Assembly: GCA_977016875.1 (NCBI GenBank)
Contig: CDRNST010000026.1
Location: 1,178,001 to 1,242,000, forward strand
DNA length: 64,000 bases
Source of the DNA: Pavona decussata
Taxonomy: Eukaryota
Direction: 5' to 3'
Shown: one piece after another, positions 3,283 to 54,413 of the stretch
Layout: each line of letters starts with the position of its first letter
Position numbering within the stretch: position 1 is the first letter of the stretch
The notes under the pieces: generated by a model
Database searches by the model: none
What the model was told of the DNA's origin: nothing
The model's input: only the letters and a program-made list of their open reading frames with translations
Program-made: the position numbers and the translations under genes

Positions 3283-6200
3283 ATGGAAAGGTTATTCGAA
3301 CATTTGAACACCATCTTCGAGGTTAGTACATTACCGAGTTTCATCGCACATTCTAGGTTCATGAAAACTGGTATTATCACGTAGAAACTGTTATTCTAAC
3401 CGCAGCGGTGTACAGTTAGCCTAAAACGCGGGGCATTCCATATTGGCACTAAAAATAGTTAGTTGATCAAGATTTAGGAAGTATGTAAACAAGAACTCGG
3501 GTCAAGGAACTGGATCTAAATAAGATTTAAAGTTCATCGCTTTCGCTTAGCTTGGATCGCCAAGAAAGCGACAATGTAGTTATAACTAGATATATTCAAT
3601 TGTATTTTTAATTCTTCGAGCAATGTACGTAGCCAAGTACCGTCCATATATTGCCCTGTACTTAGCCTAATTCGCATTAACTGTACTCGTCTAAATATCT
3701 CGGGTCACTTGTCATATTGTTTCCTCACTTACAACGTCTTAGATAAAATGCCTGCGTGGTTCTTAATACATGTGTGTATTTCTTAATTGAAAGTGGCATT
3801 AGTTCTTGTAGTACAGCATGTCTTTTTGTATTGCTAGTCTCGCTGTATTTCATATTTCCTCATACACAACAGACCATTCACGATGATGTAATGCTTTAGA
3901 AATCCAAGTTGACTTTTTCGAATTAGGTTAGTAGTTTATGCCCGAGACTATCAAGCTTGACTTTGTTTTGACGGCAGTACATTTGTTCCTAACTTCTATT
4001 TTTCGAGCATCTGTTTTCTAAAGCGAAGACATCGCTAAAAATTAATCGAAAATAAAAAGGGATTCAAAGAATTTTGACGTAATCCTCGGCAGGAAAAGGC
4101 TGGGTTTCAACGAAGTTGACATCGTCCAAAATTTCTTCCTATCGTTAGTTTAATTATTCATGTTTTCCTTCCTGAGAAAGTGGTTGATGTTTGCTCCTTT
4201 TCGGCCTTTTAATGAAGTAAAAAGAAAGTGACACTCTTCTCTCTCACTCAGGAAGAAACATAGATTTTCCACTTTGAGTCCGTGGATCAGTGAATGACCG
4301 GAAATCCTTCAGTGTGACTATGCATATCCGTTATTCAAATAAGAGCGTTTTAATAGCCTATTCGTTTGTGTTTTTGCATGCTTTACAAGGTGGTTCTAAC
4401 TTCTTTAATTTGTGGATAAACGAAGTCCTGAAGTGTATGAAGCAACATAGAGAATTGTGCGAATCTTGCGGTGTACTCCCAATTCAATGTACAATGCACA
4501 AGGTGGTTCTAACCGTGTTGAGAATTTGACGGCGACCATTCAAATAGAAGCTGTCTTTAGTTAGCAGTTTGTCAGTGCTTGTGATTTTCTTGTGTTCATC
4601 TTTCTCCGTGGGGCCTAGGCTAGCTGTAGCTTTTTGTGGGGCAAGCAAGCTACTACGTATGTTATATTTCGAAAATAAACATTTATTGAACATCGATCAG
4701 TCGAACATTGCTACTGAAAAATGAGTTTTGTTTTGTTCGTTCGCCCAGTTTTCTAACTTTTAGCGGTTTTATCTCTGACTATAAAAACTCAGGATTAGTA
4801 AAAAGCTGATTTGCGTGTTGTGACTTTCATTTCATAGGATCCCGCTTACAGCAATGTCAGGGACGAAATCTTCACATCAGGTAGGGAATGAATTCATTGT
4901 TTTACCTGGATAAAAGACTCTGCGAGGCATTCAAAAGCACTGTGGGACTACCTTGATGTTTTTACTGCATGCCTAATTTAACTTTTGAATAAGATAAACA
5001 CATTGCGTGAGATAAAGGTTTTCACGACTGGAGGCTTGTAGTCTCATGATAAATTGTCAACTGACCTATTACTAACTAGCCGCCAGAACTGAGTGACGGT
5101 CAATTCGCCCACAACATTTTTCCCCCGAAGAAAATCAGCCAAACTTCAAGCGCCCATAGTTCAAGACACCGAGCACCTCGCCGGCCATAGAAATACTCAG
5201 GAAGGGCAAGGAAGTAGTGCCTTAACCAATTCGACCTTCTCACTGATTTTATTTAGCTAATAGGCCTTTTCACAGCTATCACACAGTGTGCCAGACCATT
5301 TATATTTATGCTTAGACCTTTTGGTATGGTGTTGTCTCATATAAATAACAATAAAGGCCAAAAATCTATTCCGCATTTCTTACTTGAAAGGTAGCATTCC
5401 TTTTGCCCATCTAGAAAATGCGGATGTTGCGATAGAAATTCCTTTTCTATATTCAGTCTTTTATGGTAATTAAAATGATCCGTACCACACCGGGGACAAA
5501 ACTGTGAGGTCAGTTTGTTCTTCAGACAATCTGGCAGTATCAATACGTCATTGGCACTCTCAGCGAGCGGCTGGCTTGATATCCTCTCAGGTTGTGAAAA
5601 CGTCAGTCAGTGCTCTGACCAAGAAAAATCTCTCTCAGGACTATTCTCACCCGGATCATCATACTTTGCTGCCTTACGATCAGATCACTGCTCGGCTCAA
5701 ACCATCTGACTGAGTGATATTAAACATCCGGCGTTGTTTGCAAATTGCTTCCGGCAAAAAACGAGCTATTATGATATTAATGGCTCTTATGCTCTTAATG
5801 GGTAACAACAAAGGTTAACGTTCATTTCTGTTTGTTTCGAACTGGCTTTTCAGTAGATCGATTTCTTGTTATTCACTGTGCCTAAATTAAAATAAAGAAC
5901 AATTTTTCGTACAACAACTATAAAATATGTTCCAGGAACATCATTTAATTGATATCATATATCATATCAAACCTCTTTTTATCCACTCCCCTCGGGGCTT
6001 TTCAGGGATAATTTACAACACTTCATTTTGCGGGGGAGTTTGCCAGAGTGCTTCTTGTGCAGTTTACAATTAATGAAGTAATGTGTTATGAATGCCCCCT
6101 TATGTGTGTCAATTTGAGATAGATACTAGGGATGGTCACTGCAAGAGATTTGTTACGTCCCAAGTAGTTCTTTTTCGTCCTTATCTGAAAAGAATAGAGA

Positions 6201-9200
6201 GTCTAACCATTTGCAGATTTCAAAGCCAAGGCAGCACTTTCGCTCAGTTATTTAAAGACCATTAGTGTTGGTCCAGCTGGGAATCAAACCCAGGCCTACC
6301 GGCTCACAGTCTGTTACTCAACCAACTGAGCTGACCAGATGGCGGTCATCAAGAGGAGGACGTCCAGATTTTTCTCTGACGGAGTATGAAACTTAATCAG
6401 CTGTTTTAAGAAATTTTTCCAAAGTACAAGGGAATCACTGGCCCAGGTTTTCAAACTAAGATTCATCCCCATTTTGATACTTGTAGTTTCAGAACTTGAG
6501 CAGAAATCACCGTATTTTATACAAAACTAACGGCATCTTTGATTCCAATATGTCTAAAAATCTAGGGTTTTTTGTTCTGCTAAAACTTCGAGAAGCAATA
6601 GCCCCTTTAAGATTATAAATGGTTATTTTCAGCTATAAACTGTTAGAGAACTAAGATTTTTGGAACGATCTATGACCTGTGTAGTTCGGCAGCATCAACT
6701 GAACGTACAATGAAATTGTAAATTGCATTCCAAGCTAACATTGCTGTATATGTGTGTTCATTTCAGCCTCCGAAAAAGATTTGGAGCTGGAACCAAAGCC
6801 ACCAGTCACGTTGAAATCCTCTCGACTGGAAGAAGTCTTTGATGTTCATAAAGAAATTGGAAAGTAAGACCAACGCTGTTTTATGTAATGTTTAAAAAAC
6901 GATCAGCAGTGTTTTATCAGGTTTAAAACCACGAGGCGCAGCAGAGCCGGATTTTAGACCGGATAAAACACGTGCTCCGAGTTCTTTGAACGGCTTAAAA
7001 ACATTCGTGGAAAAGCGTTTGTCAATAGAGTTCATAACAATTATGCTTTAGTGAACGTTACAAATAGGCATACGAAAAAAACACGGCATACTAAAAAGGA
7101 GTGTTTTATCAGCTGATGAAACACTGCATACTAATAAGGAGGAGGTTTATCGATATAAAGTCACTACACGTAATGTATTATTGACTATTTGATGGACTTA
7201 TGAATTATTAATGAGTTTTTGAACAAAAAATGTTTATTCAAGGAAGTTGAACATTTTGAAAGCCCTGAATTCTCATGATCATGATAAGTAAGGGTTTGAA
7301 CCAAAACTAAAGAAAAATTCATTGAAAATAAGTACGAATTACTGGGATCAGCCATAGAGCTACATAAAAACCATAATTCTTCTTTCATTTTAATTTTCTT
7401 TTCTTTTCTTTTTTTTTTCACCACTAGGGGAAAGTTTGGTGTGGTTAAGAAAGTCACAGAGCGCTCATCGCAGAAAGTGCACGCTGCCAAGTACATCCGG
7501 CTCAGCTCAAGTGGCAGCGGTTCATCCCGTGATGATATCATGCGCGAAATCAACATCATGAACCAGCTACACCACAAGAGACTTGTGGGATTGGTAGATG
7601 CGTTTGACTTGTCGAGCAAAATTGTCATGATTATGGAGTTGTAAGTAAAAATAATTAAACTCTTTGACAATAAACATGGTGAAAAATCCCATCTGGTCGA
7701 TCAGACATACCAATTGGCTACATTGCAAAAATTGAAAAACTCCAACTCCAGCTCCCGCGGCTGTAGTGGGAACCGGACCTCAAACCGGGACCTCTAGTTT
7801 CGAGACTGGTCACCTACAAATTAATCATTTAGGCACCGCTAGCTGCCTCTTTGCTTTAAATCATCAAATCAACTGGAGGCAAGGTCAGCAAATTCGTTGT
7901 GGGTTGACAGCGTTCTTCTTTAGAAAGGAAAATTAAAAGCTAGTTGAATGGGTAACTGGAACCACAATTCTGTATGAAATTTTGGGTATACGGTCACCTA
8001 CTCAGGTCGTACACAGTCAGTACACAAAGTCGTATATGGAAAATACGAGGACGTGGCATGGAATATAAGGTACATATATCACGATAAGTGTACGCCAGGG
8101 TATGCCAAGAAAATATACGGGTCCCATACACTAGCTTGTACCAGGACATAAGTAAAAGGAGTCAAACGCATACTGGTCATTACTCAGTCCTTATATACGC
8201 CGGTGTCCTTATACGTCAGCATATGTCTCCGTAGACAATGTATACGGATTAATTATATCAGCTTATATTTGTTATTTCACGCAATTTATTTTTCTTGGTA
8301 TTCAATGAAACACATTACACCAGCGCTTGAATTCAACGAGTTTTCTGATTTGGTTTTTTTCAGTGTGTCAGGTGGGGAGTTATTTGAGCGTGTGGCGGAC
8401 GCAGATTGTTTGACTGAAAAGGAAGCCTCGTTTTACATGTACCAACTACTTCAAGGACTGCAATACATGCACAACAAAAATATTGTACATCTGGATCTTA
8501 AGGTAACTAAAAGCTCCGACAAATATTTTGAACCTCTTACCCGCCTTTGAACTTTGCCTTTCAATGCCATTCCGGTTGGTGCAGTAGGTGATCGCGTCGG
8601 ACTTTCAACCGGGAAATCGAAAGTCCCTTGTTGCGAGTTTCACGGTAGTTATACATGTATGCAACGTGAAGTATTGTTTCCTTATTAAAATATCTTCACG
8701 CTGCTGTCTTCCCAACCGCTAGGGAAACGGGTAGACTTGCACAATCCTGTGGGTGGGTACTATGTGATTAATTGCAGTCCCATCCATAAAGGTTTGGGGA
8801 GGGGAGGGTTGGAGTAGTAATTTTCTATGGTGTTTTATTCTACAAACGTCAGAGTGGCCTTGTAGTACAAGTGTGCACGATCCGTGCAGGTTTATTCCTG
8901 TAGATAGCATTTCATAGCTAGTTATAGAATGGCGAAATTTAGTGTTACAGATGATTTTTATAATCTACGTCCTGTTACCTTTAGTTAAGAAATAAGTAGT
9001 CCGCTGAATAAAGCAGTTAAGTACTAACGTTCTCTAACCTTAAAATCCTGACGCTCGTTCAATGGTTGCTTTTTATTTTCAAGATTCAAGTTAATTTATA
9101 AAACATTACGATGCCCTTTTCCGAAACAAATATATACATAAAATACATAATTAAATAGATCCTGATACAGAAGAGATTTGATGAGTACTTATCTTTTCTT

Positions 9201-12200
9201 CAACCTGTTGTATTGAAATCTCATCACTTTCACAATTTCGGAATGCATAAAGGAACTTTATTTTAAAACTGCTGTTGTTTCATTTATTTCCATAATCAGC
9301 CGGAAAACATTGTATGTGTCAGCAAAGACAGCTGGGATATCAAACTGATTGACTTTGGCTTGGCGCAGGAGCTGGTACCTGGGGTTAGAATGAAAGCACT
9401 CAAGGGAACGCCTGAGTTTATGGGTATGTACAAAGTATATAAATTATTGACGTATATAAACTGGATCATTGCATAACGCAATTCCACGGATTTGATTGCC
9501 TTAGCGACCATGGTATATGAGCCATTATACCATGCCCGCGAAATAGCGACCATTAAATTGTCTTCCGGTTGTTCTTGCAAAGCGAAATGAGCAAGATCGA
9601 TATCTACCAATATTTTTTGCTTGTTTTAAATAAAACTGCAATTATTCCACTCACGCTTGTAGGATAAGAAATGATTACCGTCAGCCAAATTCGCACAACG
9701 GCTGTCACCTCATATCCAACGTACGCTGGTGGAATAATTTTTTAAAAGACCACGTAGTTGTCTTGTAGAAAGCCTCAGACAAGGCAACCATCACAGGTAT
9801 GAATGAACAGCAGTCTATAGCGGAACTAAACATCCCCTTATTCCGTCATTGACGTCTGGTGGGTACCCTCCAGATTTGAAAGTGTTCAGTGCTTCCTCAG
9901 CCTTACTGTGTTTAGGCTTGCAACTCGTACTGTTCTGTCCATGCTTTACGTGCATTTGCAGAGTCCGTCTGAAGAAGCTACTCCACTTGAAGGTCTTTCA
10001 TCCAAACTGTCGTCCTCCTTTCGAAAAGTATCCCAGACAATGTATTTGGAAAGATCAGCGACCATGCGGTGTTTAGTCCTTTAAAAACCGTGTTTACCAA
10101 TACCTTCTATCTTCATCTTCATTAGCAGAGGGATTTGTGCCACTCGCCTGAGTTGCTGTGAATCATTGATTGTCCCATAGGAGTACAGTATTTTCTTCTA
10201 CATTTGTTCTTGGTCGACTTCGGTCATTCCCTGTGGTCTATTTAGGACTTCGCCACTTGTAAAACAATCAGCAAGTGGGAATCAATTAGAACACTTTAGA
10301 AACGACCCAAAAGACATTTATTTATGACAGAACGTTTTTGTTTCAGCTCCTGAAGCAGTCAATTTTGACACCATCTCACTAGCAACAGACATGTGGTAAG
10401 TAGAAGGCTGCTAGACAGCAGTAGTCCATACGATTCTTAAAAGTAAACCAATGGATCAGTTTTGTTCAAGCCGAAGCTTTTTGTAGAAAGCTTCTTTGAA
10501 GATTTCGGGATCAATTCCCGGTAGGGGGACATAGTGACTCCCTTATATAAGTTATATAGGTATGTGCGTCTCCAAAGGGAATGGTTTTTGAGCCGTTTTG
10601 GCCTGATATACAGTATAGATTTTAACCATTTTTGTCTAAAGGTATGAAAATGGGTAGCTGTTTTACACAAAAAGGGTTTGGATTCTAAAGACCAGGTCTG
10701 AAATGGGTATTAATTTTAGAGGCTAGGACGTGACTGCATAAAGCATCTTAAGATAAGTGGAGGATTTCTGCAGTTGCTGCCTATTTTCTGAAGGATTATC
10801 TTGCGCTTTCTTTGTGTTCTCCATCCTCAGTAAACCGTCTTCAATCGACTGATCCGATATACTGCTCCAGAAAATCCCTCGAATCGCAAAGAATGGTTCC
10901 AGAAACCATCCCCTTATTTTAAGATGCTGTATGCAACCAATCACGGCCAAATCTGAAAAAAGGATACGGAAAAATTACATATTTTGATCTGAAATAGGGT
11001 TAGGTTTTCGAGAATCGAGCTGCACACACCCATCAAAATTTTCGACGATAGAGTACCCCACCCCCGAGGATCAATTATGTAAAAAAAAAAAAAAAAAAAA
11101 AAAAAAATATGCGCGTGTAGAAAAGGGTGCATTGATCAGTTGGAGATCATTATTATTATTTATATTATAACCTCCCTTTTTATTACTTAGAATTTCTGGA
11201 AAGGGTTATTTTTTGAAACTTACCAGCTAGATTGTCAAAATCTAACTGCATGCCTTCTTTTTCTTCCAGGAGCGTCGGTGTCATAGCGTATATCTTGTAA
11301 GTAACAAAGTTTACTTCATCATCATGTTATATAATTACAGTATTTATAATTCAGAAGCATGTGCCATTTCTTCGCTGTATAAGTGTACTAATTCGTTTCT
11401 TGAGTCAGTAACATGAAGGTAAACACAATTAAATGTTATCGTGTTCCACCATATATGAACATTCGTAACTGCTCCTGCTATTGTCTTCCGGTGTTTGGTG
11501 ACATTTATAAAAACATCGACCACAACACGTCAAAAGGTATTGAATTCTATCAAGAAATCATTCATCCTGTCATGTCCTCTTAGATAGGAATATGCCTTTA
11601 AAAAGTACTCAACATTTGATTGATTTTGAACTCATAGTCAATCGGAGCAAAACAAAAATTCATTTTTAAGAAAATAACTATACTCTTTAAGTTTCATGCA
11701 GTCAGTTCGACCGACACCTTTCATCATCGTTTGTTGACCACAATCTTCTTAGTTGATCTTAGTTTTATTAATTCCTCCTATAGGTGTGTTTATGTTTATC
11801 TCGCTTATGAAAACTAGTTCAACATCGCGACTATGTTTATGACTTAAATTGATTCTTTATCCGAAGGCTCAGCGGTCTATCCCCATTGCTGGGAGACGAC
11901 AACAACGAAACCTTAGCCAACGTCACCGCTGCTGAATGGGACTTTGATGACGAAAGCTTTGACGTCATCTCGGACGAAGCCAAGGAGTTTATCTCCAAGT
12001 TACTAATAAAAAGTCCCAGGTAAGGGCTGGCTTGCGTTACACCAAGAAAGAAACAAAAAGAAACAGTGATCCTTATATCGCAACGTAGCCATCTCTTTGC
12101 TACGCAAGGCAATTTTTCTTGCAACTTGTAACGCAACGATGACCAAGGCATTGCTGAGGCAAACAAGGACACTCATCGACAGTTTTGGTACATTGGAGAA

Positions 12201-15200
12201 GTGATTTATGACAAAGCTAGAACATTATTCTACTTTTCTATTCACAGGAAAACGTTTTTGAGTTTCTGAAATAACACGAAATCCACAGGACACTTCCTCT
12301 TTGAGTAGGCAGTATTTTTGTTTTTGCTCCGTTTTTCGCCCAGTTTATCGACCCTGCTATCGGCCCAACAGCAAACACCATACCGAGAGTGTCTCACAAT
12401 ACGACACATCCTGTCGTACAATCAGAGTAGAGAAGGCAAGAATTTTGGTTTCCAGCTCAACAGGGCCAGGGGTTCCTTCGATTGCCTCTGGGCCTTGGAC
12501 CTTGGGGTTTTATAGGTGGCTTGCATTGCTGCCATGTTGGTGTACAAGACAAAATAAAATTTGTTCATATATAGTTGGCATAAAAATGGAAGTAAAGTCC
12601 CAGAGGAGAAAAATCTAATGTTCAGTACACCAACATGACCGCCATGACGTCATATGCAAACCATCAATTGTTTTACTTGGCTTGATGGTCTGCACGATTA
12701 AGAACAATATTGACTGTTTGTTGTTTGTTTCTTTGTAAAACTGTAGAAAGCGTAACACCGTCAAACAAAGTCTTGAGCATGACTGGATGAAGGTAATAAG
12801 ATTAAATTACAGTTTGCTGAATCATTGTGGTATTTTTTTTCTTTGTCAATTTCTAAGAAAGTACTCTTAACAGAAACTCTCTGACAGTGTTAAATGAATT
12901 GTCTTCTATGATGTGGATCAACAATATAGAAACTATCAATTTTCTCGGTATAAATTGTCTCTTAAACGAAAACATTGCAAACTGAATTAGTGATTGCTAA
13001 AAAAAAACGCTTTAGAGATTTTATGTTTTATGAGATTTTTGAGATTGAATTTGCAACGTTCCAGACGTTCGCAAAGTTTTCAAAACCAGTCATTTCGTTG
13101 TTCGGATTCATATTTCTTATAACTTTGATATTTCTCCCTTAGAAAAGTGCCTCAGCAAATGCAGTGAAAATCGACACCAAGAAATTAAGGCAGTTTTTAG
13201 CCAAAAGAAGGTGGCAGGTAAGGACCGATGCGAATTTGAATTAAAAACGCTGAAAAGAACCGGGAAAGGTTTCCCCACAAAAAAATCCTACTTGACTCCC
13301 GAAAAGGTTAGAAAATTTGTCGACGTTTGCAGTTATACTGCCAGTTACTATTTTTTTATTTGTTACTAGTTTTTATTTGAGTTAAGGTTAATTTGGAATC
13401 TAGATTTCTTGCTAATTTTAGGAACCAAAACTAACAGAGTTTAACCTTTGAAAACACAAGCGAGCTCCGCGCGATCAAAGAGAATGGTATCACTTCGTTG
13501 CTAACATGGATACTACTTAGTTCTGAGTTTCCGTTGTTGACATTGAAGCTAAACTGTTCCCGTGTTATCCAAGAGTGGGATGGGGCATAATCGGAATGAC
13601 ACACTTTCACCGCGTCGATGTACCAGTTAGGACGCATTGCAATGTTGCGGCAATGTTAACATGCCCTTTTTTGGTCAGATTTTTACAGATTTATTCAAGT
13701 CTCTGTGACAACGTTTAAAAGTTATTACATTGTTTAACGAAGTTCTCAGTGTTTACAGGAATCGGGGTAAAACATATGTGGTGCTCATGCAATAACTCGT
13801 CCTAATTTAAACCTCTGATATTCTGATTAATTATTAGTAGGGTGAAAATGGTTTTCCCCTGGTATTGTTCCTTGCATTTGTTTTATTTCTTAATTTCTAC
13901 AATTTTAATCAAATGAATGATTGAATGATTACTAACAATGATGATTTGACGTGATTTGTTAACAACTAACGATAACAAATGAATTGAAATCAGAATCACT
14001 AAATAAACTGTTGATTATTTAATTGTAACGAAGAAGTGATTTGCTTACCAACTATAATATTGCACAAACTCCTGACCAATACAATTACACTAGCCAGTCG
14101 AGTAATAAGAATTTCAGCAGAGGAGCCGGCAGAATCCATCATACATTCCCTATTCAGATAAAATACATGTCACGTGATTTTTAGAACGTACCACTCCTCC
14201 GAGGATACAATGGCCGTCACCCTCCTTGCGTGAATGGTCTCATGGGTGATAAGCGTCGTGTGATTGGTTACTGCTTAACCTACTTGGGATTCTTGGAGAA
14301 TGGTGGCGATCTAAAAAATAGCTTGATACATATTTTTCTTGGAATAGGATGTGTTGGAGGGGGGATGAGTCTATTCTCTGCCCGTGATCGATGATCTGTT
14401 CATGGCAGTGGATATCGCCACAAAAAAACCGAGATTTTGATTTGATCCATTGTTTGCTCACTGATTTGGGAAAAATCTCTCCTTTCTCTCCTTATATTTA
14501 ATCTCCGCTTCTCACATATAACGGAAAGTAACGTCCCACCCTTACTAATCCATGGCTAACACTACACGTACACTTATCCATAAATTGCACTTCATCTCCG
14601 GCAAAGATGAACCGCGTTCATTCACAACTCACAGCACAGATCACGTCAAACCAATTCTGTACATTACATATGCTCATAGATTCCCAGCTTACACGCATGC
14701 GCCATTTATTCAGGCTTGCTGACCGAAGATGAACTCCTCGAGGTTAGTGGTGTGTGAAACCAATACCACATGCGTGTGAACTAAGGTCATTGACCATAAA
14801 TCACTAGCAATGGAATTCCAGTGCTATTTCTACACTGTCACACAACGCAACATGGCATCAAAAGTGAGACAGTGTCAAAAACACAAAGTCTTACACTACA
14901 CAACAATATTATGCAGTGCAACACTGAACATCATATCGTATGTGACAGACAGTTAAACAGCACTGAAAAACTCATTCCAAGGTAAGTTTGTTGCTATCTG
15001 AAACACACAACACAAGGTTGACGTAGTTACCCAAGGAAACGGCCTCAGCTTAAATGACTTCAGTGTAAGTACCGAATACGTGCAAGGCACTTTAGTGTGA
15101 GGCAGCGAGCTCAAATGAAATTTCTCAGACTGATACCTTTAAAAATGCCTTATCATTTCCTTTTGGAGTAAAATAAAGACAAATAAGCATCAGATTAGAT

Positions 15201-16040
15201 TAAATGAAAATAGCGATATAACATTGACTCCCAGCTCCAGCGTCCAACTCATGGGACCTGACCTGGTCTAACGTATCTTTTTTTAATGTGACCAGTCAAA
15301 TGAGAGCTATCGAGCGGTAAACCTTCTATGTTAGTGAATAAAAACCTTAATTAACCTTAACCGGTTAACTTTCAACTGCATGAAAACTGCGAAGCAATCC
15401 TTTCCTTTGTTGTGGTTTGCAAGTTAACAGAGTTAACGTCCTTCTTACTCATTGGAAAATTGTGTCAAAGTTTCAAATTGCGCACGATTCAGCTGTGAAA
15501 TTGGAGCTATTGAGCCTGCGAACGAAATAGTAATGAACCCGACAGCCTTGTAATTGTGTTCACAGAAATCCGTCAATGCCCTCGTGGCCGTTCGCCGATT
15601 ATCAAGCATGACATCCCTAATGAACATAAAAAGCCGGCCTTCTGTTGTGCCCTCCTTAGCAACCGTGCCTTCTAGTAACGAAGAGGAGGAAGAACTGGAG
15701 CGTGATGACGAGGAAAGTAGGGAGCATGGTCAAACAAGGGAAAAACGTGTACTCGTTGATAAACCTGTGGATAAAGAGGGACACCCTGCTGTAGAAGGAA
15801 AAGAGCAAATATCAACAGGTAAGTATTCTGGGAACTTTTGATCCTTTAAAAGCAATTAAAAAGTCTAAGAACAAAAATGAGCTCGGAACTCAACAAGGCA
15901 GTCAATGAAAAACAAAGTTTGTTTTTTGATGAAGTTGCTGTAGTAATTAACTTTCTAAAGAAGCTGTGTTTTGATTATTCATTGACCGAACGACCGATTG
16001 ATCGATCTATCAATCAATAGATCGATTGAGCGATTGATTG

Positions 16041-16092
<52 letters not shown>

Positions 16093-19000
16093 CTTGCTTG
16101 CTTGATTTATTAATAGATTCGACTGGTTGGTTGTCTCGTTGATCGCTTGATCGGATTGATCAAATGATTGATTACACATTGATTCTTTCATTCTTTTACT
16201 GACAGAGCTTCCAGTTTTCACCAAAAAACTAAGTGACGTTTCGAACATCGAGGGAGAAACTGTTTCCTTGGAGGTCGTCATCAAAAACGACTCAAACTGC
16301 CAGCTGAAGTGGTTCAAGGATGGAAATGCAATCACTGAGGGTGGGAGAATATCTCTTGTCAATTGTGGCGAAGGACGATATTCACTTGTTATTCAGGATG
16401 CTGAAGATGGAGACTCTGGGCAGTACTGTTGTGTGGCTCAAAATGAGAGCGGGAAGGTCACGAGCACTGGAAAGCTATCTGTGGAAGGTAAGCCCAGCTT
16501 TTCTTCTAAGATGGGTCACACTACATTTCGATACTCAAAAAGAAGCCCTTCAGATCAACAGTAAAGTCATATGGACAAAGCATTAGGAGTTCCATGAGTA
16601 GAAAGTAACTTTGAAGGAGTCCACACCTTTGTTAGTTCCAATAAATCACTATGTTAATGGCACCTGAGTTGTAAAGGCGTAAGCAAGAATCATCGGATGC
16701 CAATTTAACTTGGGTCCGTTGTTAGTGAACAGAACTAGTAGACAATTGTTTCAATTGCAGCTGCGTCCAAAAGCGAGGACACCGAGGACGAGGAACAAGA
16801 GATTGACAGTTCAATAGGTGAGTGGCTACCAGACACAATTGTCACTAGCAGTGTTAAAATTAAACCAGGAACGTCAGGCTCAAATCGTGGATTTTTCTTA
16901 TAATTTAAACTTTGGTTTTGACAAACGTATTGGCCCTGGGTGGTTCCGTTTCCAAGGAGCTGCGGGAACACGAACGGCCACTTCGTGTCCACCTAAGTTT
17001 CGCTGTAACACCCATGCACCCGGTTGGTTGATAAGTGGGCATCCCACAGTGGCCTCAGGAGAGGTTACCAGGAAGGTATGTTTTCACTGGTCGGAAAGTT
17101 GCTGTCTTTATTCAATCAATATCAAAGTGAAGAACTGTGGCTCTTTATACGTGTACTACTTTGACAGTACACCAGACAGAGTACATGATACTGAAACATT
17201 GCACCTCCAGAAACGCAACATTTGGATACTGGGGACAGTAATGGAAGTGGAATATTTAAAATAGATATATTTGAACTGCGGATGAAAGAATAAATAATTA
17301 AACGACCATCGCAGTTATGTTCGCAGATATGTTCAAGCCTGTTTTTTTTTTCAAGCCTTCCGTTCCGCAACTACTTAAATTGCGGACATAACCGCTAACG
17401 ACATGCAATTAATCCTCATAGAAAAAGTCTACTCTAACCGAGACTCAATCCGTAAGGCCAGGGAAGCCTTTTTTAATCTCAAAAGGCAGAACACTCTTTC
17501 CACATGGCCTTAATATTCGCGAAGAAATGTACTAGCTTTTTTCCTTTTATTATTTTTTTTATTTTTTGTTATTATTATTTAATTTGCTTCATATTTTATA
17601 CTGTCAATCAATTTAGTTTAACGTAGTTCCGCTATTGCGCAAATATTTGTCAGCTATATAAGCGTACGTCCCAATGTAAATTTTCATTATACCTGAAGAA
17701 GGCTGGTTTGGCCAGCCGAAATATAGTAACCTTTAAACCGTAACTCTACATTGTATCGGTCTCTGCTTCTTTTGTCATTTGTATTGGTTAAGCCGATCAG
17801 ATCAACAATTGATCCAACGTATACCAGCAGGATAATCGTCCACGGTTGTTGCTTGGACTTGACTCATAACTGCGATGTTCATTCACTTTAATATTCATTC
17901 TTTCAACCGCAGTTCAAATGTATGTATTTCATATATTTCACTTGCGTCTCTTGACCTCGATGGGTATATTACGAATACACATGAAATGACCAGCTCTCAG
18001 TTGGCTTGATAGCTCAGTTGGTAGATCACTGCAAAAGTATCGCAGAGGTCATGGGTTTGAATTTCTTTCAAGCCTGAATATTTTTCAGGCTTTCTTTTCA
18101 CAATTACTTAAGTTCTTAAATAACTGCGATAGCTATTCACTTATTTATTCATTGAGAACAGTACAGAGGAACTCTGCTAATGAGGTCATACTTATGTGGT
18201 CGTATTAATGGGGTTCTAAAACAAACCGAGGATTTTAAAATAACTTATAATAAATTAATTTATTAATTTATATTGCGCAGTATCAACATAACATAAGGCG
18301 AATAAGTCCATGAGCTATTCTTCAAAACGAACAAATTAACAATAATCGTAATCATGATAATAAGAACAGTCGAAATCGCGATCATAATCATACCCTAACG
18401 ATCAGATAATAACAGCAATAACAAGAATAATAAACCTGATTCAATCCTAATTGTGTACAATACTCTCATAGTAATAACCACGATCACAATCATAATCATT
18501 ATAACAATGGTAACGCTAACGATAGTGATAATGTTAATGATAGTAATGCAACACTTCCGTCGGTCTCGAATCGACGAAAAGACTAAGCCATTTTCAATAG
18601 TTAACTTAATAATTGTTTAAAATAAACCTGTTGCTCTGGACTTTGAGGTAACTTCAGTTGGTTCACAGTAACTTGTTGCATTGTCGAGTAAGGGTTTACA
18701 ATAGTAACCTACCGATGACTTGTACCATAAACGGTTGTGAAATCATACTGTAGATATGCAGCTCGACAGCGACCGTGAGAGTGAAAGCGCTGGCTACCTC
18801 CATCACTTGACTACCTTTTTTTCATTATGAATAATACGCTGAGAGCATATTTCATGTTCTGTTTCACATCATACCTTAACATGGACATTTACCGTGCTTA
18901 AACAGAAGTCCCAGTTTTCATGAAGGAACTCCACGACGTCACAGTCAATGAGCGAGACACCGTTACACTTGAAGTGGTTGTCAGTGGTAATTCACCCTAC

Positions 19001-23947: not shown

Positions 23948-23997
<50 letters not shown>

Positions 23998-29900: not shown

Positions 29901-32900
29901 GTACCATTTACAGAAAGCAGAAAATCCGAGGACCAAGAGACGACATTAGATGTAAAGAAACTCGAGTCCAAGCTGAAGGAACTTATCTCCAAATTGCAAA
30001 ACGCTGAGAAAGAAAACCAACTCCTAGAAGACAAACTTCGCGACGAAGAAGAAAGAGCCGACACTTTGGAGGAAGAACTACACAAGAATGAGACTTCCAA
30101 AAAAGAACTGGAAGAACAAGTGACAAAACTAGAAACCGAAAAGATTAATCTGTCGAAGAAAGCCAAATCAAACAGCGACGTTTTGAAGAGGGTGGCGGAA
30201 TCAGAGGGAGAGAAAAGAGCTTTAGAGGACCATCTTCTCGAAAAATCAAAGAACTTCGAAACTCTATCTCAAAAGTACAATTCGCTTAAGGAGAAGATGG
30301 ATAACTACGATGTTCTTGAAGAAAAAGTTTATATTTTCGAACGAGAAAGAAAAGAATATCGAGACACAAAGAAGAACTTAGAAGAACAGCTTGAACAATT
30401 ACGAACGGAAAGAGAGGAATTGGCACAAATGAACGAGAAAAATACCTCGGTCAATAGAAACCTCGAACATGAGATAGCCAGGCTAAAAGGAGACAGGGAA
30501 GGATTGGAAAGTCAATATAATACTTTGCGAAGTGAAAAGGAATCTCTAGTCGAGGAACTTACAAATCGATTTGAAGTCTTAGATGAACAGAAAAATGTAT
30601 TATTAGAAGACAAAACTGATTTGGAAACAAAACTGAAAACGCTTGATGGAGAAAATAATAACTTGAAGCTCAAATTGGAGGCTCTAGCGAAGGAGATGGA
30701 AGTTTCAAAGGAGAATGCCAAGAAGAATAATCTAGAAAGAGAAAAAGATGAATTGGAGAAAGAGCTCAACAAGATCAGGAAACAGAAAGAAGAAACACAG
30801 AAGACCTGTGAAGATTTGGCTTCAAAACTAAGCAAAGCATACGCGGAGTTAGAACAAGCTAAGCCAACAGTAAATAACAACGGAACATCAGGTATGTACC
30901 ACTGCGTAACGGTATGAGAGAATGAGGTAAAAGAGAATGTCCCACAATCAACAACTATTCCTAGTGAGGAATGTATCTGAGTTATTTTAAGTTCAACCAT
31001 AGCCAGCAGATATTGATTATATAATGATTACTGAATGGGGAGCAGCGGGAAGGGCTCAGTGGTGAGAACCGCGTAAATTGATTGAGTTGACAAGCCGCCA
31101 TAGAAATTTCCTTTGAACTTGACTAACGTTTTTGGAGGATACTTTAGGTAGGCTGTGTGACAAGTGCTGGAGAGAGGAAAGAGAGGACAGCGAGAGGAAA
31201 GGGGGTAAGGCGCCTTGCTTTCCCCTCCCCATCGCGCTTGAGAATCTCTCCTCTCCGTTCACTTTTAGCGTCCCCTACGAAGTCTATCGTTTTGGAGAAA
31301 CGTGCCAAATCGGCCCTTTTTTAAAACTGATTGACAGAAGTAACTTCTATCGTAAGACATCTTTAATTTAATTTAATTTAATGAACTAAAAGTGAAAGAT
31401 TTACACTTTTTGAACAATCCGAACACGATGTAGAGTAAGCTTCTTTCCCTAAACCCGTACACTGGCTAACAACAAGGCCACCTACAAGACTAGTATGTTA
31501 TGATGTTATAGTTAGAGTTGATAATTTGGTCATAACCACTTTCGGTCACTTTCTACTAACAGAATCAAATTTTATTTTCCTCTCTAGTTGATCAAAAGGA
31601 AGAGATTGTCTCTCTTCAAGAAAAGGTTTCATCACTTGAAAGGGATCGGGAAAATTTGGAAGACGATCTCGACGACAAAGAAAGAGAAATTGATGAAATG
31701 AAAAAGAATATTGAGGAACTTGAAACGGACAACAGAGAAAAAGATAAAGACCTTCTGAATTATAAAGCACAACTAGACGCTGCTAATGAGGAAATAAAAG
31801 CGTTGAGGACAAAAGCGGCTAAAAAAGATGAGGAGAGGGCAAATACAGCAAAGCGTGGAGAAGACGAGGCAAAAGCGGAGTACGAGAAGAGAAGGAAAGA
31901 TTACGAGTCTATGATTGAGAAGCTAACAAAAGAAGTTTCTTCACTGCAGGGAAGACTTTCGACCGCAAACCAGAAGAACAAAAACTTGGAGGAAAAGGTG
32001 AAATGTTCGAAACAGGTGAGAAACTACCTTCTCGGTATCATAAAATGATTGTCACGTTCAAAGTAATAGTTTACACTCAGTGGCGATCGCTGCAATAGGT
32101 CCTCGGCAATCGCTTGCGCGCATGTGCAATGATTATGTTGAAAAATGTTGCAGCGATGAATAGACGTTATTCAAACTGAATGGTCGCTAAGGCTTCCCGA
32201 CTTTTAGACTTTTCAAGAAATTAATATGACCACGTGAACGGGTATATATATATAGGTTATTGAACTAACGTGAGGTCCATATTGGAAAAGTACTGGCCGA
32301 GTTCTTTTTTTTCAATTTTTTTCCAAGATCAGCACGCACATTCTCCTCACCGTTCTCCATATATTTCTCATGGTACCAGTTAGGAGAATTTGCTTAGACA
32401 TCAAGACATTTTTGGATATTTTGTCTTCGGGGATGATACTGTTTTTGTCCTGACGACCTGAATGTTTGATCAAGCTGTGAGATTGTACTAGGGAGAAATT
32501 TGATGCGGGTCACTTGGACCTTAAAGGATTATTAAGGTGTGTGGAAGCGCAGGTTGTACATGAAGTATGTTCGCATTCGATCCGATCACTAAGATCGCGA
32601 AGATCATCGCGTTTCGTGTATAAATTATATGTTCACAAATGATCACTGCGATCACTAAGTTCTTTCTTCAACGATAGCAAAATGCTCTTAAATGAGTTTT
32701 AAAAAATTGTTGGGCGATACTAGGTCTTGCGATTTAGTTTTCTCTGTTTTAAACTTAATGGCTTGTTGTTGGATTATATAAAAAAAATATAGGGTATCGA
32801 ACACCTGAAATTTTTTCATGGGTCATGGGAGAGAAAGGTTTCGGGTTAACATAAAAAGGACGACAGGATCTGATTACCAGACAACACGGTTGAATAACCA

Positions 32901-35900
32901 ATTTCCATTAGGGAGGCTAAATGCAAAGCTTTTCATGTGAAAATTAGTTTTGTGCCATAAGAATGAAAACTAATTTTCATGATAAAAGCTATGTGCGAAG
33001 CCTTGCTTTCAGAATGAGATTGAAAGGAACTCGGAAAAAAACCATTAGAGAATGCTGGTCCTGCACTTAAAAACGAATGTACCGTATGAATTGTACATCG
33101 TGTTCTTCTGGGAACGTAATGCGAATGACAGTCACTCCTGTCTGGGGAGTATCAAAATGTTATTGTGTTGTTTGTTAATAACTTCCATGTTTCAGGCCAG
33201 CCGTGTGGAAGAACAATTTGTAGCAAGAAACGAAAATCAACTGGAAAGCGCATCGGTGACTTTCAATGAATATCTTCCAAGTGAAATAGAAGAACTGGTT
33301 GGAAACGAACAGACGAATGGCCAAATGGAAAACAGTGGGACAAGTTATGACACGAGCGAGAGCGACAGAAACATTCAGCTGAAGAAAGACTTCGAAAACT
33401 TAAAACTGTTTACGGAGGAACTGGAAACGAAGTTGGCAAAGGAAAAAGAGGGGAAACGATCATTGGAATCTGAAGTCGAGAATTTTGAGCTGGAGAAGCG
33501 AAGGGGAATGAAGATGTACCGAGAATTGGAAGAGGAGTGCAATCGACTGAGAGACGAATTGACTGAAAACGGCTCTTCTCAAAACCAAGTTGAAGTGAGG
33601 GTGCGAGAGAAACTGAGAGTAAGGCTCGAAACTAAAGAAGAGGAAATCGAAGCTCTGAGCAAGCAGGTGAACTCGCTGAAGAAAGACTTGCAGATCGTCA
33701 AGGAAGAAAGAGATAAAGGTGACATGCATTATGCCAGTCTTGTAGAAAAATACAAGAATCTCTCGAAGGAAAACAAAATCTTGGAGCAAGAGAAACAAGA
33801 ACGGCATCAACAGGATTGTAAATCGCGGGAACTGGAAGAGTCCATGCAAACTCGCATTCGTGAGCTTGATCAGATGAAAGATGAAATTGAGTCTATGAGA
33901 GATAACTTGCGTACCCTTGTACGAGAGAAAGAAATGGGGATGAAGGAATACACGTCTCTACAAAAGGATATAATGAAGTTAACAAGCGAACGCGAAGAAC
34001 TTGAAGAACAAGTTCGTGGCGAAATGCAGCGTGCTGACAAGTTACAAAGGGAACGTTGTTTGCTGCAGGAACGAGTGGAGGAAATGCGGAAGGACTTGAA
34101 CAAAAGAGATCTGGTCGCCGCGGCTGATAAAAAGACTATCGACACCTACGCCGACGAAATCAAGATTTTGAAAGACGAAAAGGAGAATGCTGACAAGGAA
34201 ACTGCAAAACTGAGAAAACAAAGCGCAAATTTGCTTCAAGACCTGGAGAGATTGAACAAAGAAAAAGAACATGTTGGCAGTCTTAAATTAGAAAAAGATA
34301 GTGTGTTGAAGGAAGTTGAGCTTTTACGAAAGGAAAATCATCAACTTGTACAAAAACTCGTCGAATTCGACCAAATGAAAGAACATTGTGGAAATCTCCG
34401 AGATCATCTGGAGAAAATGAACAGAGCATGTGAAGATTTAGCCACGCTTAAAATTTACAAAGAGGAAGCGGCTGAGAAGATTGCGATTTTAAGAAACGAA
34501 AAGGAACAACTTGTTCAAAAGGTGGACCAATTCAAGGAAGAACTTGACAAGCTCAGACAAGAAAAGGTAGTTGGACTTGAAGAACTGGAGAAATTAAGAG
34601 AAGAAAACGAGGATCTACTTGAGGAAATAAGGGAATTGGAAGACAACAAGGAAGAAGTTGAGAATCTTAGGAACGAGAAGCATATCGCAACAAAGGAAAT
34701 CGACATCTTGAAAGAAGTGAATGAAACTCTTTTAAAAGAGCAGGAGGAATTGAAAAAAGTGAATTTGGATTTCAGAACTCTGTCAAATGATAAAGAAAGC
34801 GTCTCAAAGGAGAATGAAGCATTGAAGAAGGAAAATGAAAATCTATTGAATGAAATTGAAAAATTAAAAGGAACCCATGAAGACGGCAGTGCTCTTAGAG
34901 AAGAAAGAGACATCCTCTTGAAAGAAGTGGAGAGATTAAATGAAGAAAATGAAAGTCTTCTTCAAGAATTTGAGAAACTAGAATTACGAAGAGCTGATTT
35001 AGAAACCGAAAACGCAGCTTTAACTAACAATATTGTACAATTTGAAAGAACGAAAGAAGAAATGAAAGCGCTGAAAGAGGAAAAAGAAAAAGACCTAAAT
35101 GAGAGTGACGAGCTAAAACAAGAAAATAAAGTTCTTTTGGACAAGCTTCAATGTCTGCAAGGGATCAAAGGAGAACTTCAAACTTCCCTAGAAGAAAAGA
35201 AATGTATTGAAAAACAGAGAGAGGAATTCGAAATTCAGCTCGAAAACCAAGCATTAGAGATGATGCGGCTCAAAAAAGAAACGACATCTTTAAAGAAAAA
35301 GATTGACGTTATCACGAAAGATTTTCATCGGCTTCAAGATGAGAAATCTCTTCACGAGGAAGAACTTTTGGCATCTCGGAAAGCAGATTTAGAAAAGATA
35401 GAACTCCTGACAAAGGATCTTGAGCGAATTCAAGAGGAGGAGACTTTGAGTCAAGATAAACCAATTTCTGCTGTTAATAAAGGGGGTGCAAAGTCTACAC
35501 GTGATGCTATCCAGATCAAAACTTTGAAAGAAGAAATTGGATTCCTTGAGAAAGAAGTCGAAGACTTAAGTGAGGAAAACAGAGAACTTTTGCAGTCATA
35601 TAAAGGTCTGCAAAAAGAACATGGCTGTCTTAAAGAGGAAGTTAGTGCCATTGAGAAGCGCTTAGAAATAAAAATGAATGATCTTCAAAGTGTCACTGAG
35701 GAAAGGGACTTTCTGGAAAAGAGAAGGGATGAATTAGAACAAGAAGTGCAAACGAACTCACTAGAGCTTCAGGAATTGAGAAAAGATTATGATCCAATAT
35801 GTCTTAGACTGGAACATGCAGAAAAGGAAATTCAAGATTACGTTAAAGAAAATGAAGAACTGCATCAAAATTACATCGAATTGGAAGAGAAATATGACCG

Positions 35901-38900
35901 CATTCGCAAACTTAATAGGGAACTAGAAGAAGACATTGATATCGAAAGCAACAACCTTGTAGAAGCAAAAAGTCGCATTGAAGAACTCAACAAAAGTAAT
36001 GCAAACCTGCGGCAGCGGATAACGAAAATGCAACAAGAAATTTCCAAATTGCGTGGAATTTCTGAGGTGAGAAATGAAGAACATGGAGAACAGACTAAAA
36101 ACGCGCCCCAGGTGGAGAAAAACAAAACCATAGTACAGTCAAGGAGGGAGCAGTTAGAAGCCCGACTCATTACGGAGGAACTCAGGTCTAGTAAATTTGG
36201 GGAAGAAAATCGCAGGCTGAGGAATCGAGTGCAAAGCATTGACGAGAGTCACGAGACAATCGTACACGAAAACGAAAGGACTATTAAATCGCTTGAGAGG
36301 GAAGTGAAGAATTTTCGGTCTTCGAAAGAGCGAGCGAACGCACTAGAAAAAGAACTTCAGGAATTGAAAGAAAAACTCGATTTTGAAATCTCAAATAGTA
36401 ACAACAAGTCTGAAGAAATCAACCTCAAGAAGAAAGAAAATGATTCTCTCATCTACGAACTTGAGAGCACAAGACACAGGCTTGTCTCCAACGTTCTTAA
36501 TCCTTTAGAGGAAGCCACATTTCCGGGAAATTTCCGCGTTTCTGCTGCTGATATTTCCGCAGGGAAAAGCAAGGCCTGGTCTAGCATCAAGGAAGGCATT
36601 ATAACACTCAACAGGGAACTCGAGAGATTAAGCGCTGAAAATACAAGTTTGCAGCAGGCGTGTTCCGAGATGAAAGAAGAAGGTCAAGTTCTGAAGGAGT
36701 CTGCCTACTTGACGAATGAAGGCAACGAAAGTACTCAGGTAAAAGTTGCTATCTTCAATAGGATGTCTTATACTTTAATTTATACGAGTTTGATGTTTAT
36801 ATGAAACATGCCGATTCATTAAAATCATTGTCATTGGTTACTCGTTGAATGAGAGACTGTTGTGACTGAATTGACTAATGGACTGACACAGCTGACTGAT
36901 TGACTGACTGATTGACTGACAAACTTACTGACCGTGACCGACTGACAGACTGTCCGGCAAACAGACTGACTTACTCGCTGACTGGCTTGCTGCCTACCTT
37001 ACTGGCTGGCTGACGTCTGACTGAGTAACAGTAACAGTAGCAGTGCATCTCCAAAGGGAGGCATTGACTGATTGAATGACTTATTGGCTGGCTGGCCGAC
37101 TGAGGACTGACTGACTGACAAACCCTCTGACTGACAGACAGACTGACCGACCGACTGACAGACTGACCTGCTAACAGACAGACTGAATGATTGGTTGGCT
37201 GACGTCTGACTGACTAACTGAGTAATAGTAACAGAAGCAGTATATCTCCAAAGGGGGGCATTGACTGATTGATTGACTGACTGACTGACTGACTTATTGG
37301 CTGACTGGCTGACTGACAAACTGTCTGAATGACAGACTGACCAGCTAACAGACAGACTGACTCATTGTTTGGCTGACGTCTGATTGACTAACTAAGTAAC
37401 AGTAACAGTTGCAGTATATCTCCAAAGGGAGGCATTGACTGACTGACCGACTGACTGACTGACTGACTGACTGACTGACTGACTGACTGTGACCGACTGA
37501 CAGACTAACCGGCTAACAAACGGACAGACAGACTAATTGACTGACTGCCTGACTGACGACTGACTGACTAAATAAGAGACTGACTGACCGACTGACAGAC
37601 AAACTGGCTAGTTGACCGACTGACCGGCTAAGAGAGATACTGACTGAGTGACCCGTAGGCTGACTGATTCACTGCTGGGACCGACTTTAACCAATTGTTT
37701 CAAAAGATTGATGGAGTGACAAATTTAAAATAATTAATTGTTTAATTGACTGCTGGAATGTCCGAGTCAACTGTTGGTCGTTCTTATTATTTTCCACTTC
37801 AGAAACTGGAAAAGGTCAAACCCACCCGCAAACCACCTACCATGGAAGACATCTCAGGCAAAGAAAAGGAAGTCAAAGCTCTACACCAGAAAATTGCCCA
37901 AGACGAAGAAGACTTGGCGTTGGTTCAAAGCAAAAACAAGGAGCTGCTTCGTCGGATAGAATTTATGAAACGAATGCAGCTTACAAATGACCAAGATAAA
38001 CAGAAGCTAGCGTCCCAGAGGTCGCTATCCTCTTCAATGGATGGTAGACTGGATCAGAATGTATGTTCAGAGTTTAAACTGCAAAGATGTCATACAGTTG
38101 AGAGCATTTCAATTATCGGACGCGATGAGCCTGTTGAGAAGCCACATGACATAGATCGCATTCACGAACTTCTTCAAGATGACCTGGTGAGTGAAAACTC
38201 CGAGAAAGGACAAACGAGTGAAGCCAGTGACGTGGAAACCAGTACAACGCAGATACCTATAAACGAACAAGATAATGGATCGGAGGAAGAGCAAATGGAG
38301 ATTGCGCGGGAACTGGTAAAGAAAAACAGGCGAATATTCGAATTGGAACAGGTTGGTGAGCATAGCTATGCCGGTTTTTCCGGAATCACTCAGCACATGC
38401 ACCTGCAAAAAGAGAAGCTTTGATGGCACCTAAGACCACGAATAAATGGCACCGTCTATCACCAATGTAATCTGCAATTCCAGATTAACCTAATTTAAGC
38501 ACATTTGTAAACGTAAATGCACTATGATGTAAAAAAGTGGCACAATTGCTCATGGAAGTAATGCACTCGGTTATTGCATCATAAGTCGGTAATCATCATA
38601 AAGCGCATTTTCTAAGTAGAATTTGGTAACGTAAATTTTAAAGGGTGATAAAGGAAATGTTCCACATTTTGCTGGTGGAAAATGCAAAATGATCATGTTC
38701 TGGTTGTAGAACATGATCTGCTAACACTGGACGAAAAATCGGATACCAAATTCACTTGCTCTAATTGCAATAATACTCTAAAGTTGTTCTACCAAACAAG
38801 TGGCGTGCAATACACTACACAAACTAAACGATTAAGTTAAAACAAAAAGCACTACAAATAAGTAGGTTAATTAGCGTCATTAATTGATCACATTCAACAC

Positions 38901-39227
38901 GCCACGTTCAATAACCTGGCAATTCAGTTTCCTGAGGCTGCATGCTGATTTCTCTACGTAGTTTGTGGGTCCCAGTGCTGAATAATTGTAAAAATAGAAC
39001 TTTTAAATACTTCCTAGGTTATACACCACTCTGCGTGGGCTACATTTGAGTTTAGCCTTTACCACGTGATCAAGAAACGACTAATGAGAGCACGTGTTAC
39101 GGTCAAAGAAACTCTAGCTATTAAATAATTAATTTAGTGTCTGCACTTACTATCACAAGTCTATGCAAACGTCAATGTCAGCATCATCGTCGTCATTATC
39201 ATTACCCAAGTATTCATCACCGTCATG

Positions 39228-39275
<48 letters not shown>

Positions 39276-54344: not shown

Positions 54345-54375
<31 letters not shown>

Positions 54376-54376
54376 A

Positions 54377-54413
<37 letters not shown>

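Follow-up and report, generated by a model that had tools for sequence, protein, structure and literature searches.

Introduction

Do the exons that lie between positions 3283 and 43233 of this stretch of the genome of the coral Pavona decussata belong to one giant gene, in which two kinases and two immunoglobulin (Ig) domains are joined through a long coiled coil to a death domain, or to two neighbouring genes that are read as one? The window, that is, the whole stretch of 64,000 nucleotides (nt) that was analysed, covers positions 1178001-1242000 of contig CDRNST010000026.1 (C26) in a 602-Mb assembly. It is AT-rich animal DNA (GC content about 39%) with short exons, its proteins have close relatives in stony corals, including Desmophyllum pertusum, and the letter N does not occur within 3283-43233. 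The analysis reported here points with good confidence to a single-copy stony-coral gene on the + strand of 3283-43233, with 34 exons and about 3,100 residues. The product of this gene begins with a myosin-kinase head of the calmodulin type, followed in order by two Ig domains, another, unusual kinase, a long coiled-coil rod and a death domain.

Transcripts across the joint between kinase 2 and the rod

The answer depends on the interval between the last exon of kinase 2 and the first exon of the rod. Two micro-exons on the + strand, 27162-27206 and 29378-29438, had been proposed to bridge it through the junctions 25620>27162>29378>29914. Spliced contigs of four RNA-like runs, from four studies, were aligned to positions 24300-30250. 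These are Logan contigs, which are de Bruijn assemblies, and a contig that spans two genes does not prove a single transcript. The joint 24527>25575 within kinase 2 was found in all four runs, 25620>27162 in three, and both 27206>29378 and 29438>29914 in four, each with GT..AG borders. All the junctions claimed in the earlier note were recovered in this way, and the micro-exons have the sizes and phases that it gave, namely 45 nt in phase 0-0 for the first and 61 nt in phase 0-1 for the second.

Two single contigs, X2-8 (1,641 nt) and X7-14 (1,924 nt), link the kinase 2 exon 24378-24527 to 29914-30250. Each covers exon 24378-24527, then 89 letters identical to the two exons that follow, then micro-exon 2 and rod exon 1. 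Contig X7-14 carries a further 1,465 nt upstream of 24378, a part that lies outside the aligned stretch and would, by the exon model, extend to exon 15566-15818. The contigs lack the introns and therefore do not come from genomic DNA. A retrocopy as their source is ruled out, because the genome contains rod exon 1 only once. The ATG at 29880, which opens the frame of rod exon 1, was considered as a separate start of the rod and rejected; it sits in unconserved intron sequence. Rfam gave no real match over the bridge interval.

The bridge intron also holds a near-perfect long inverted repeat, or hairpin, at 26290-26690 (core 26440-26600). Contigs pile up on it at a depth of 400-1,300 in each of the four RNA-like runs, where they show a wide variety of joints and loose ends, and it is probably a dispersed, transcribed repeat resembling a miniature inverted-repeat transposable element. 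The only Rfam match to this hairpin is to a microRNA precursor and is below threshold (26 bits versus a cut-off of 50).

Conservation of the bridge in other corals

The locus was compared with three other assemblies: that of species 2 (an ENA assembly, loci L005-L009), that of D. pertusum (L004) and that of species 3 (L012). All 34 exons are found in species 2, in order and on one strand. Identical lengths and borders on AG/GT (ATG for exon 1) are kept in 29 of them, and adjustment of five indel-bearing borders gives an open frame of 3,243 residues with AG/GT throughout. The chain that leads from kinase 2 through micro-exon 1 and micro-exon 2 to the rod is present in D. pertusum and species 3 as well. 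In the protein, the two micro-exons would form a short hinge that is conserved. Across the three assemblies micro-exon 1 has 69-80% amino acid identity with its splice sites kept, and micro-exon 2 has 81-85%; the latter measures 64 nt in D. pertusum, with the frame preserved.

The introns that flank the micro-exons cannot be aligned across the assemblies, and in all three comparisons the DNA of the interval 25400-30000 is conserved essentially only at the four exons. Two further blocks align in species 3 only, one of about 60 nt upstream of micro-exon 1 and one of 47 nt at 27606-27652. Separate poly(A) and transcription start sites between 25620 and 29900 had been named in advance as the mark of two adjacent genes; in the three comparisons no island resembling a terminal exon or a promoter is conserved across species in 25.6-29.9 kb.

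In D. pertusum, both micro-exons are spliced to the rod in the annotated protein OS493_026222. The annotation of the orthologue there (MU825895.1:100655-123517) is nonetheless split into at least seven 'hypothetical proteins' (OS493_026215 to _026222 and others), which seems to result from 1-nt indels in the assembly. Such apparent indels within exons suggest assembly errors and not a broken gene. Other joints are crossed by proteins too: P0011, an annotated D. pertusum protein, crosses 30891|31588 and 32015|33196, and P0044, a spliced open reading frame (ORF) from another species, crosses 42107|42926. The proposal of the earlier note that one gene joins the kinase half to the coiled-coil and death-domain half is upheld by the RNA contigs, by the conservation of the micro-exons, by the D. 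pertusum protein and by the lack of any other conserved island. Along the protein, conservation is high towards both ends, at 80-98% in the kinases and 90% in the death domain, and low in the rod (42-68%), which also varies in length.

Several candidate homologues were set aside. P0016, P0010, P0015 and P0022 proved to be either generic coiled-coil proteins or unrelated. Locus L011 (an ERZ26695794 contig, 36785-57549) holds a lone ORF that is 38% identical to part of rod exon 1 and is uninformative on the fusion; it adjoins a sugar-transporter gene and a transposon-like ORF, without kinase exons or other exons of the gene nearby.

Exon model

The exon chain was built with a simple dynamic programme based on splice sites and codon usage, and was then corrected by hand from the paralogy of kinases 1 and 2, the DNA around 13143, the RNA joints and cross-species conservation. 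Several small exons had been mis-chosen by the programme and were replaced on the grounds of kinase paralogy, RNA joints and conservation. The curated chain has 34 exons on the + strand, all with AG/GT borders, and runs from the ATG at 3283 to the stop codon at 43231-43233. Spliced together, they give a frame of 3,117 residues with zero internal stops. The 34 exons in one open frame of the earlier note are retained, and its length of 3151 residues is not; the difference of 34 residues, or 1%, comes down to a few border choices. Pfam was applied exon by exon, to single stop-free exon segments, and returned two sets of Pkinase pieces, two I-set domains, weak coiled-coil families and one Death domain, which includes every domain that had been expected there (Pkinase twice, I-set twice and Death).

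Exon 1 (3283-3321, + strand) consists of the ATG plus 13 codons and a GT donor; its ATG, length and donor are the same in species 2, and an in-frame stop lies upstream at 3226-3228. The region 2900-3400 has a mean identity of 78% to species 2 without a common reading frame, with tblastx blocks in several frames. Judged by sequence, the conserved non-coding block upstream of the ATG (2938-3282, + strand) looks like a promoter or 5' untranslated region, and is listed here as a putative core promoter/5' untranslated region. Exon 2 (4838-4880, + strand, 43 nt) has a counterpart of equal length in species 2, with 86% amino acid identity and AG/GT borders. Three other choices were discarded in curation. 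A start of kinase 1 at 'KFIENKYELLG' (about 7300) was dropped for the conserved exon 6767-6863. An optional 57-nt exon at 31148-31204 has no match in species 2, and P0011 crosses this joint without a 19-residue gap. The donor at 38186 gave way to that at 38351: homology reaches the end of the long form, and species 2 has GT at the aligned position.

Kinase 1, its regulatory tail and the Ig domains

Kinase 1 is of the MLCK/DAPK type and is encoded on the + strand by eight exons between 6767 and 12792 (6767-6863, 7428-7640, 8364-8502, 9300-9423, 10347-10395, 11270-11296, 11867-12019 and 12747-12792), assigned by Pkinase pieces, motifs and solved relatives. Its catalytic motifs are complete (GKGKFG, AAK, HLDLKPEN, DFG and APE). 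The best solved relatives of the N-lobe exon are DAPK3/1, while the C-lobe exon is closest to MYLK4 (E 7e-15), followed by DAPK2, twitchin, obscurin and titin. This is a catalytic domain of the MLCK/DAPK/titin clade with its catalytic residues intact, and its exons have 80-100% amino acid identity to species 2 with identical lengths.

The kinase is followed by a tail encoded by exons 13143-13217 and 15566-15818 (13143-15818, + strand), with the reading frame set from the DNA. After ..EHDWMK come 25 residues that end in ..AKRRWQ; the next exon opens KSVNALVAVRRLSS, and an acidic linker follows. Split across the two exons is the motif W-x3-V-x2-L-x5-L, a 1-5-8-14 pattern with basic flanks (KRR/RR), which we take to be a close likeness of the smooth-muscle MLCK peptide. 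On this pattern the tail is a putative autoinhibitory segment of the calmodulin-binding type. Its first exon (13143-13217) is 96% identical in species 2, and a search of the regulatory-tail exon against the PDB gave no meaningful match.

An Ig domain follows the regulatory segment, as in the MLCK family. Ig domain 1 (16206-16487, + strand; I-set E 9e-21) and Ig domain 2 (18906-19187, + strand; I-set E 1.5e-20) each occupy one 282-nt exon in phase 1-1, and the Pfam matches span the segments 16172-16561 and 18902-19240. The best solved relatives of the first are titin and MyBP-C, with telokin at E 1e-9; the second is 87% identical in species 2. Between them lies an acidic linker exon (16761-16817, + strand), 71% conserved in species 2 with AG/GT borders.

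Kinase 2

Kinase 2 is encoded by eight exons between 20174 and 25620 on the + strand (20174-20309, 20497-20697, 21803-21938, 22669-22792, 23205-23253, 23354-23380, 24378-24527 and 25575-25620). Its evidence consists of Pkinase pieces, conservation and the joint 24527>25575 in four runs. It has DFS in place of DFG and KPQN in place of KPEN, identically in three species, and retains the Lys, the Glu, the catalytic Asp/Asn and the metal-binding Asp. It has no calmodulin-binding tail. The exons are 82-100% conserved and therefore under constraint. The two kinases are 45% identical and share the same intron positions and phases, including those of the 49-nt and 27-nt micro-exons, and therefore arose by tandem duplication.

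Coiled-coil rod

The rod and the C-terminal coiled segments occupy eight exons between 29914 and 42107 on the + strand (29914-30891, 31588-32015, 33196-36738, 37803-38351, 39410-39721, 40531-40619, 41421-41514 and 41909-42107), recognised by heptad score, scarcity of proline and weak Pfam matches. Model residues from about 950 to 2500 have a high heptad-type score and almost no proline, and the pattern continues with interruptions up to about 2950. This amounts to some 1,550 nearly proline-free heptad residues plus about 450 interrupted ones. Over the big rod exon, autocorrelation is strongest at lag 7. Pfam gives only weak coiled-coil families over 29874-42193, and neither Pfam nor the protein-library searches found a significant similarity to myosin or paramyosin tails. 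The few hundred nm that the earlier note allowed for the rod assume a continuous coiled coil, which would reach about 230 nm (1,550 residues of 0.1485 nm); were the interrupted part helical too, the reach could grow to about 300 nm.

Against the 42-68% identity of the rod to species 2, the last four coiled exons stand out at 75-90%. By the curated chain, the big rod exon is about 160 residues longer in species 2. Inside this exon, 34180-35200 has a 38-residue periodicity: the BLOSUM autocorrelation at lag 38 lies about 4 standard deviations over the mean, and lags 76 and 114 are also raised. Tandem Repeats Finder detected no 114-bp array at the DNA level in the big exon. The intron after it contains long (TGAC)n-type microsatellite arrays (36892-37653), and a (TCA)24 run is found in the next intron (39214-39286).

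Death domain

The last exon (42926-43233, + strand) encodes the death domain and the stop codon, as seen by Pfam, homologues and a fold model. Pfam Death matches the segment 42904-43230 with 24.5 bits versus a cut-off of 22.6. There are 18 homologues of this exon, at 69-97% identity, and it is 90% conserved in species 2. The AlphaFold2 model is a six-helix bundle with a predicted local distance difference test (pLDDT) score of 86. When this model was compared with the PDB by Foldseek, the top 30 matches were all death domains, with template modelling (TM) scores of 0.6-0.76 and CARD only lower; they include FADD, PIDD/RAIDD, ankyrin-G (26% identity), Fas and TRADD. The fold search was needed for this, since a sequence search of the domain against solved structures gave nothing significant.

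Nearly all full-length homologues end in the same C-terminal tail, ..KPRKK[L/F]FGW (43204-43230), for which the model has pLDDT below 50. Its last three residues fit a hydrophobic-x-hydrophobic end, similar to a class II PDZ ligand. The nearest death-domain paralogues in the genome are 37-38% identical and belong to Roc-COR-Death genes on contig C25, where at least five such genes form a tandem cluster (C25:2438015-2636140; L010 = 2428500-2438400). This cluster is a DAPK-like context.

Comparison with known systems

A 563-residue Ig-Ig-kinase 'MLCK' is known from the muscle of the jellyfish Aurelia (PMC5958069), and other combinations of kinase and death domain are known from sea anemones (PMC5094078). 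The coral gene resembles MLCK/MYLK in having a CAMK-group kinase nearest to MYLK4/DAPK, a putative calmodulin segment right after kinase 1, and an I-set domain after the tail, placed as telokin is in MYLK; with the Aurelia and Hydra MLCK it shares the Ig-Ig-kinase order. Unlike MYLK and Aurelia MLCK, it has tandem kinases, no Fn3 or actin-binding repeats, and about 2,200 more residues of coiled coil and death domain. Kinase 2, with DFS and KPQN and without a calmodulin tail, also sets it apart from MYLK.

DAPK1 (kinase, calmodulin site, ankyrin, Roc, COR, death) opens with a Ca2+/calmodulin-type kinase from the same clade and has a death domain at its C-terminus. The coral protein likewise ends in a death domain, which is the DAPK-family feature and belongs to the DD subfamily by Pfam and by its six helices. 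The middle of the coral protein is instead Ig-Ig-kinase plus a long coiled coil, and where DAPK has its basic loop the coral protein has a shorter one, Ser/Gly-rich and not basic. Ank, Roc and COR matched none of the 20 larger stop-free exon segments in the exon-by-exon Pfam scan, several short exons lying outside that scan.

Obscurin, SPEG and UNC-89 are similar in that a giant protein carries two MLCK-clade kinases with Ig between them, one kinase being atypical. The coral gene lacks their Ig/Fn3 arrays and DH-PH, while those proteins lack a long coiled coil and a death domain. There are two Igs only in the coral gene, no Fn3 and no DH-PH, and the conserved sequence upstream of the ATG is non-coding. 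The likeness to ROCK, MRCK, DMPK and citron is one of layout only: a kinase at the N-terminus, a docking module at the C-terminus and, between them, a coiled-coil spacer, which in the coral protein is predicted to be dimeric. A middle that diverges between ends that are conserved is what a spacer would allow. Those proteins, however, are AGC kinases with PH/C1/CNH ends, and their rods are several times shorter and have no sequence relation to the coral rod, whereas the coral gene has CAMK-type kinases and a death domain at the C-terminus. With FADD, PIDD/RAIDD and ankyrin-G the coral domain shares the six-helix death fold (TM 0.66-0.76, 20-27% identity); it differs from these adaptors in ending a coiled-coil kinase and in having its own invariant basic-hydrophobic tail, and no solved chain is detectably related to it by sequence.

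The comparison with DAPK1, MLCK and obscurin/SPEG/UNC-89 drawn at the outset was a fair one: each has part of the features of the coral gene and none has them all. The gene resembles these three, and ROCK in its layout, but fails a defining feature of each. Full-text literature searches returned no description of a kinase-Ig-Ig-kinase-rod-death architecture, although automatic annotations elsewhere may still hold it.

Neighbouring genes

Upstream of the window, the + strand of C26 (L002/L003) carries coiled-coil, PDZ and SH3 exons of a MAGUK/CARMA- or DLG5-like gene, with PDZ and SH3 confirmed by Pfam. A separate coiled-coil exon extends from L003:9423-10000 into positions 1-121 of the window, about 3 kb upstream of the promoter-like block, and is conserved in species 2 at 78%. 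On the other side, a sugar-transporter gene (MFS, Sugar_tr) follows the death-domain gene on the + strand, at 52138-55442.

One gene, two genes or two promoters

A number of points weigh against reading the locus as one gene for a protein with two kinases. The RNA nature of the runs is a guess, the kinase 1-Ig1 links and several rod junctions are set by conservation and phase only, and the coding sequence of about 9.4 kb is not spanned by any single long read. When the big exon, rod exon 1 and the death-domain exon were searched against the protein libraries, only fragments or exon-sized ORFs came back, and no full-length annotated homologue. The DFS change, as read from the sequence, may inactivate kinase 2. 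In run X1 the contig depth is 7 on the kinase joints and about 30 from 27206 onward, contig depth being a poor measure. An unspliced contig covers 26959-27189 (X1, depth 10.5) and an X9 contig lies at 27003-27153; these may mark either an internal start, giving a rod-only isoform, or a retained intron.

The rise in depth at micro-exon 1 and the unspliced contigs, together with AATAAA motifs in the bridge intron and the ATG at 29880 in frame with rod exon 1, speak for a pair of adjacent genes, one a tandem kinase and the other a coiled-coil/death-domain gene, with the joined RNA as a minor read-through product. Nonetheless, both micro-exons are conserved as coding sequence, in splice sites and phase, in four species, and more so than the rod. 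The rest of 25.6-29.9 kb is unconserved apart from two short blocks in one species, with no terminal-exon or promoter island, and the ATG at 29880 is not conserved either. Joints and rod are of equal depth, or lie on one contig, in three of the four runs, and the joined frame is open in two species. Several ATGs precede 27162 in the leader, and the model's rod reaches its first in-frame Met only about 160 residues in. We consider two genes very unlikely. An artefact, in which the assembler made chimeric contigs and the long frame arose by chance, is hardly credible at all: the de Bruijn origin of the contigs, by which a two-gene contig need not be one transcript, is countered by exact GT..AG intron removals in four independent runs over single-copy exons, and by the same exons and phases in other genomes. 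One gene with an additional internal promoter at about 26.9-27.1 kb deserves more weight than either, while still being unlikely. Such a promoter would yield a kinase-less rod/death-domain isoform, telokin-like, that competes with or regulates the full-length form. Vertebrate MYLK does use internal promoters, and telokin is made from within the MLCK gene. The depth step in X1 and the unspliced contigs upstream of 27162 agree with this, as does the conservation in species 3 that reaches about 60 nt upstream of micro-exon 1. Yet this upstream region is unconserved in species 2 and D. pertusum, the leader is full of upstream ATGs with a stop directly at the acceptor, and the contigs could be pre-mRNA.

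Proposed mode of action

For the single full-length protein that we favour, a working model can be outlined. The rod would form a parallel coiled-coil dimer, which would place two pairs of kinases at one of its ends and a pair of death domains at the opposite one. Docking to a death-fold partner or scaffold would fall to the death domain, together with the strongly conserved last coiled segments and the basic-hydrophobic tail. Ca2+/calmodulin would then release kinase 1, which might phosphorylate the myosin regulatory light chain or targets within the reach of the rod. The rod itself would act as a spacer, free to drift in sequence and length, and kinase 2 may be a constitutive or scaffold kinase. 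Contractile signalling might in this way be linked to scaffolds of apoptosis or immunity; an equally possible role for the death domain is that of a cytoskeletal or adaptor anchor.

The latter role leads to a reading of the same protein that we hold to be plausible if short of likely, namely a structural part in muscle or the cytoskeleton, like that of obscurin, UNC-89 or twitchin. The rod would co-assemble with myosin or paramyosin-like filaments, and the death domain would be an ankyrin-like adaptor anchor without a link to cell death or immunity. The Ig domains are nearest to those of titin, MyBP-C and telokin, kinase 1 is MLCK-like with a putative calmodulin-binding motif, the fold search places the death domain of ankyrin-G near the top of its matches, and jellyfish muscle has an Ig-Ig-kinase protein similar to MLCK (PMC5958069). 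Against it stand the lack of significant similarity between the rod and myosin or paramyosin tails and the place of the nearest death-domain paralogues in Roc-COR-Death genes. A bolder proposal, speculative and rather unlikely in our judgement, is that the protein is a functional analogue of DAPK assembled from different parts. A calmodulin-gated pair of MLCK-type kinases would be held about 230-300 nm away from a death domain that joins or nucleates death-fold assemblies, so that Ca2+ and actomyosin would gate apoptosis or innate-immune signalosomes, for example in symbiont loss. The rod would then be a molecular ruler, and kinase 2 a calmodulin-independent partner.

Significance

In the gene described here, one conserved polypeptide links a contractility-type Ca2+/calmodulin kinase, whose regulation is putative, with a death-fold module. 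To our knowledge, this link between kinase and death fold is otherwise made in animals in DAPK1, with entirely different middle domains. Coral cell biology thereby gains a testable candidate for coupling the Ca2+/actomyosin state to death-domain signalling or anchoring. The seven or more 'hypothetical proteins' of D. pertusum illustrate that current coral annotations can shatter genes of this kind. Finally, the conserved ends, together with a rod that drifts and varies in length, make the gene a natural test case for coiled coils as spacers.

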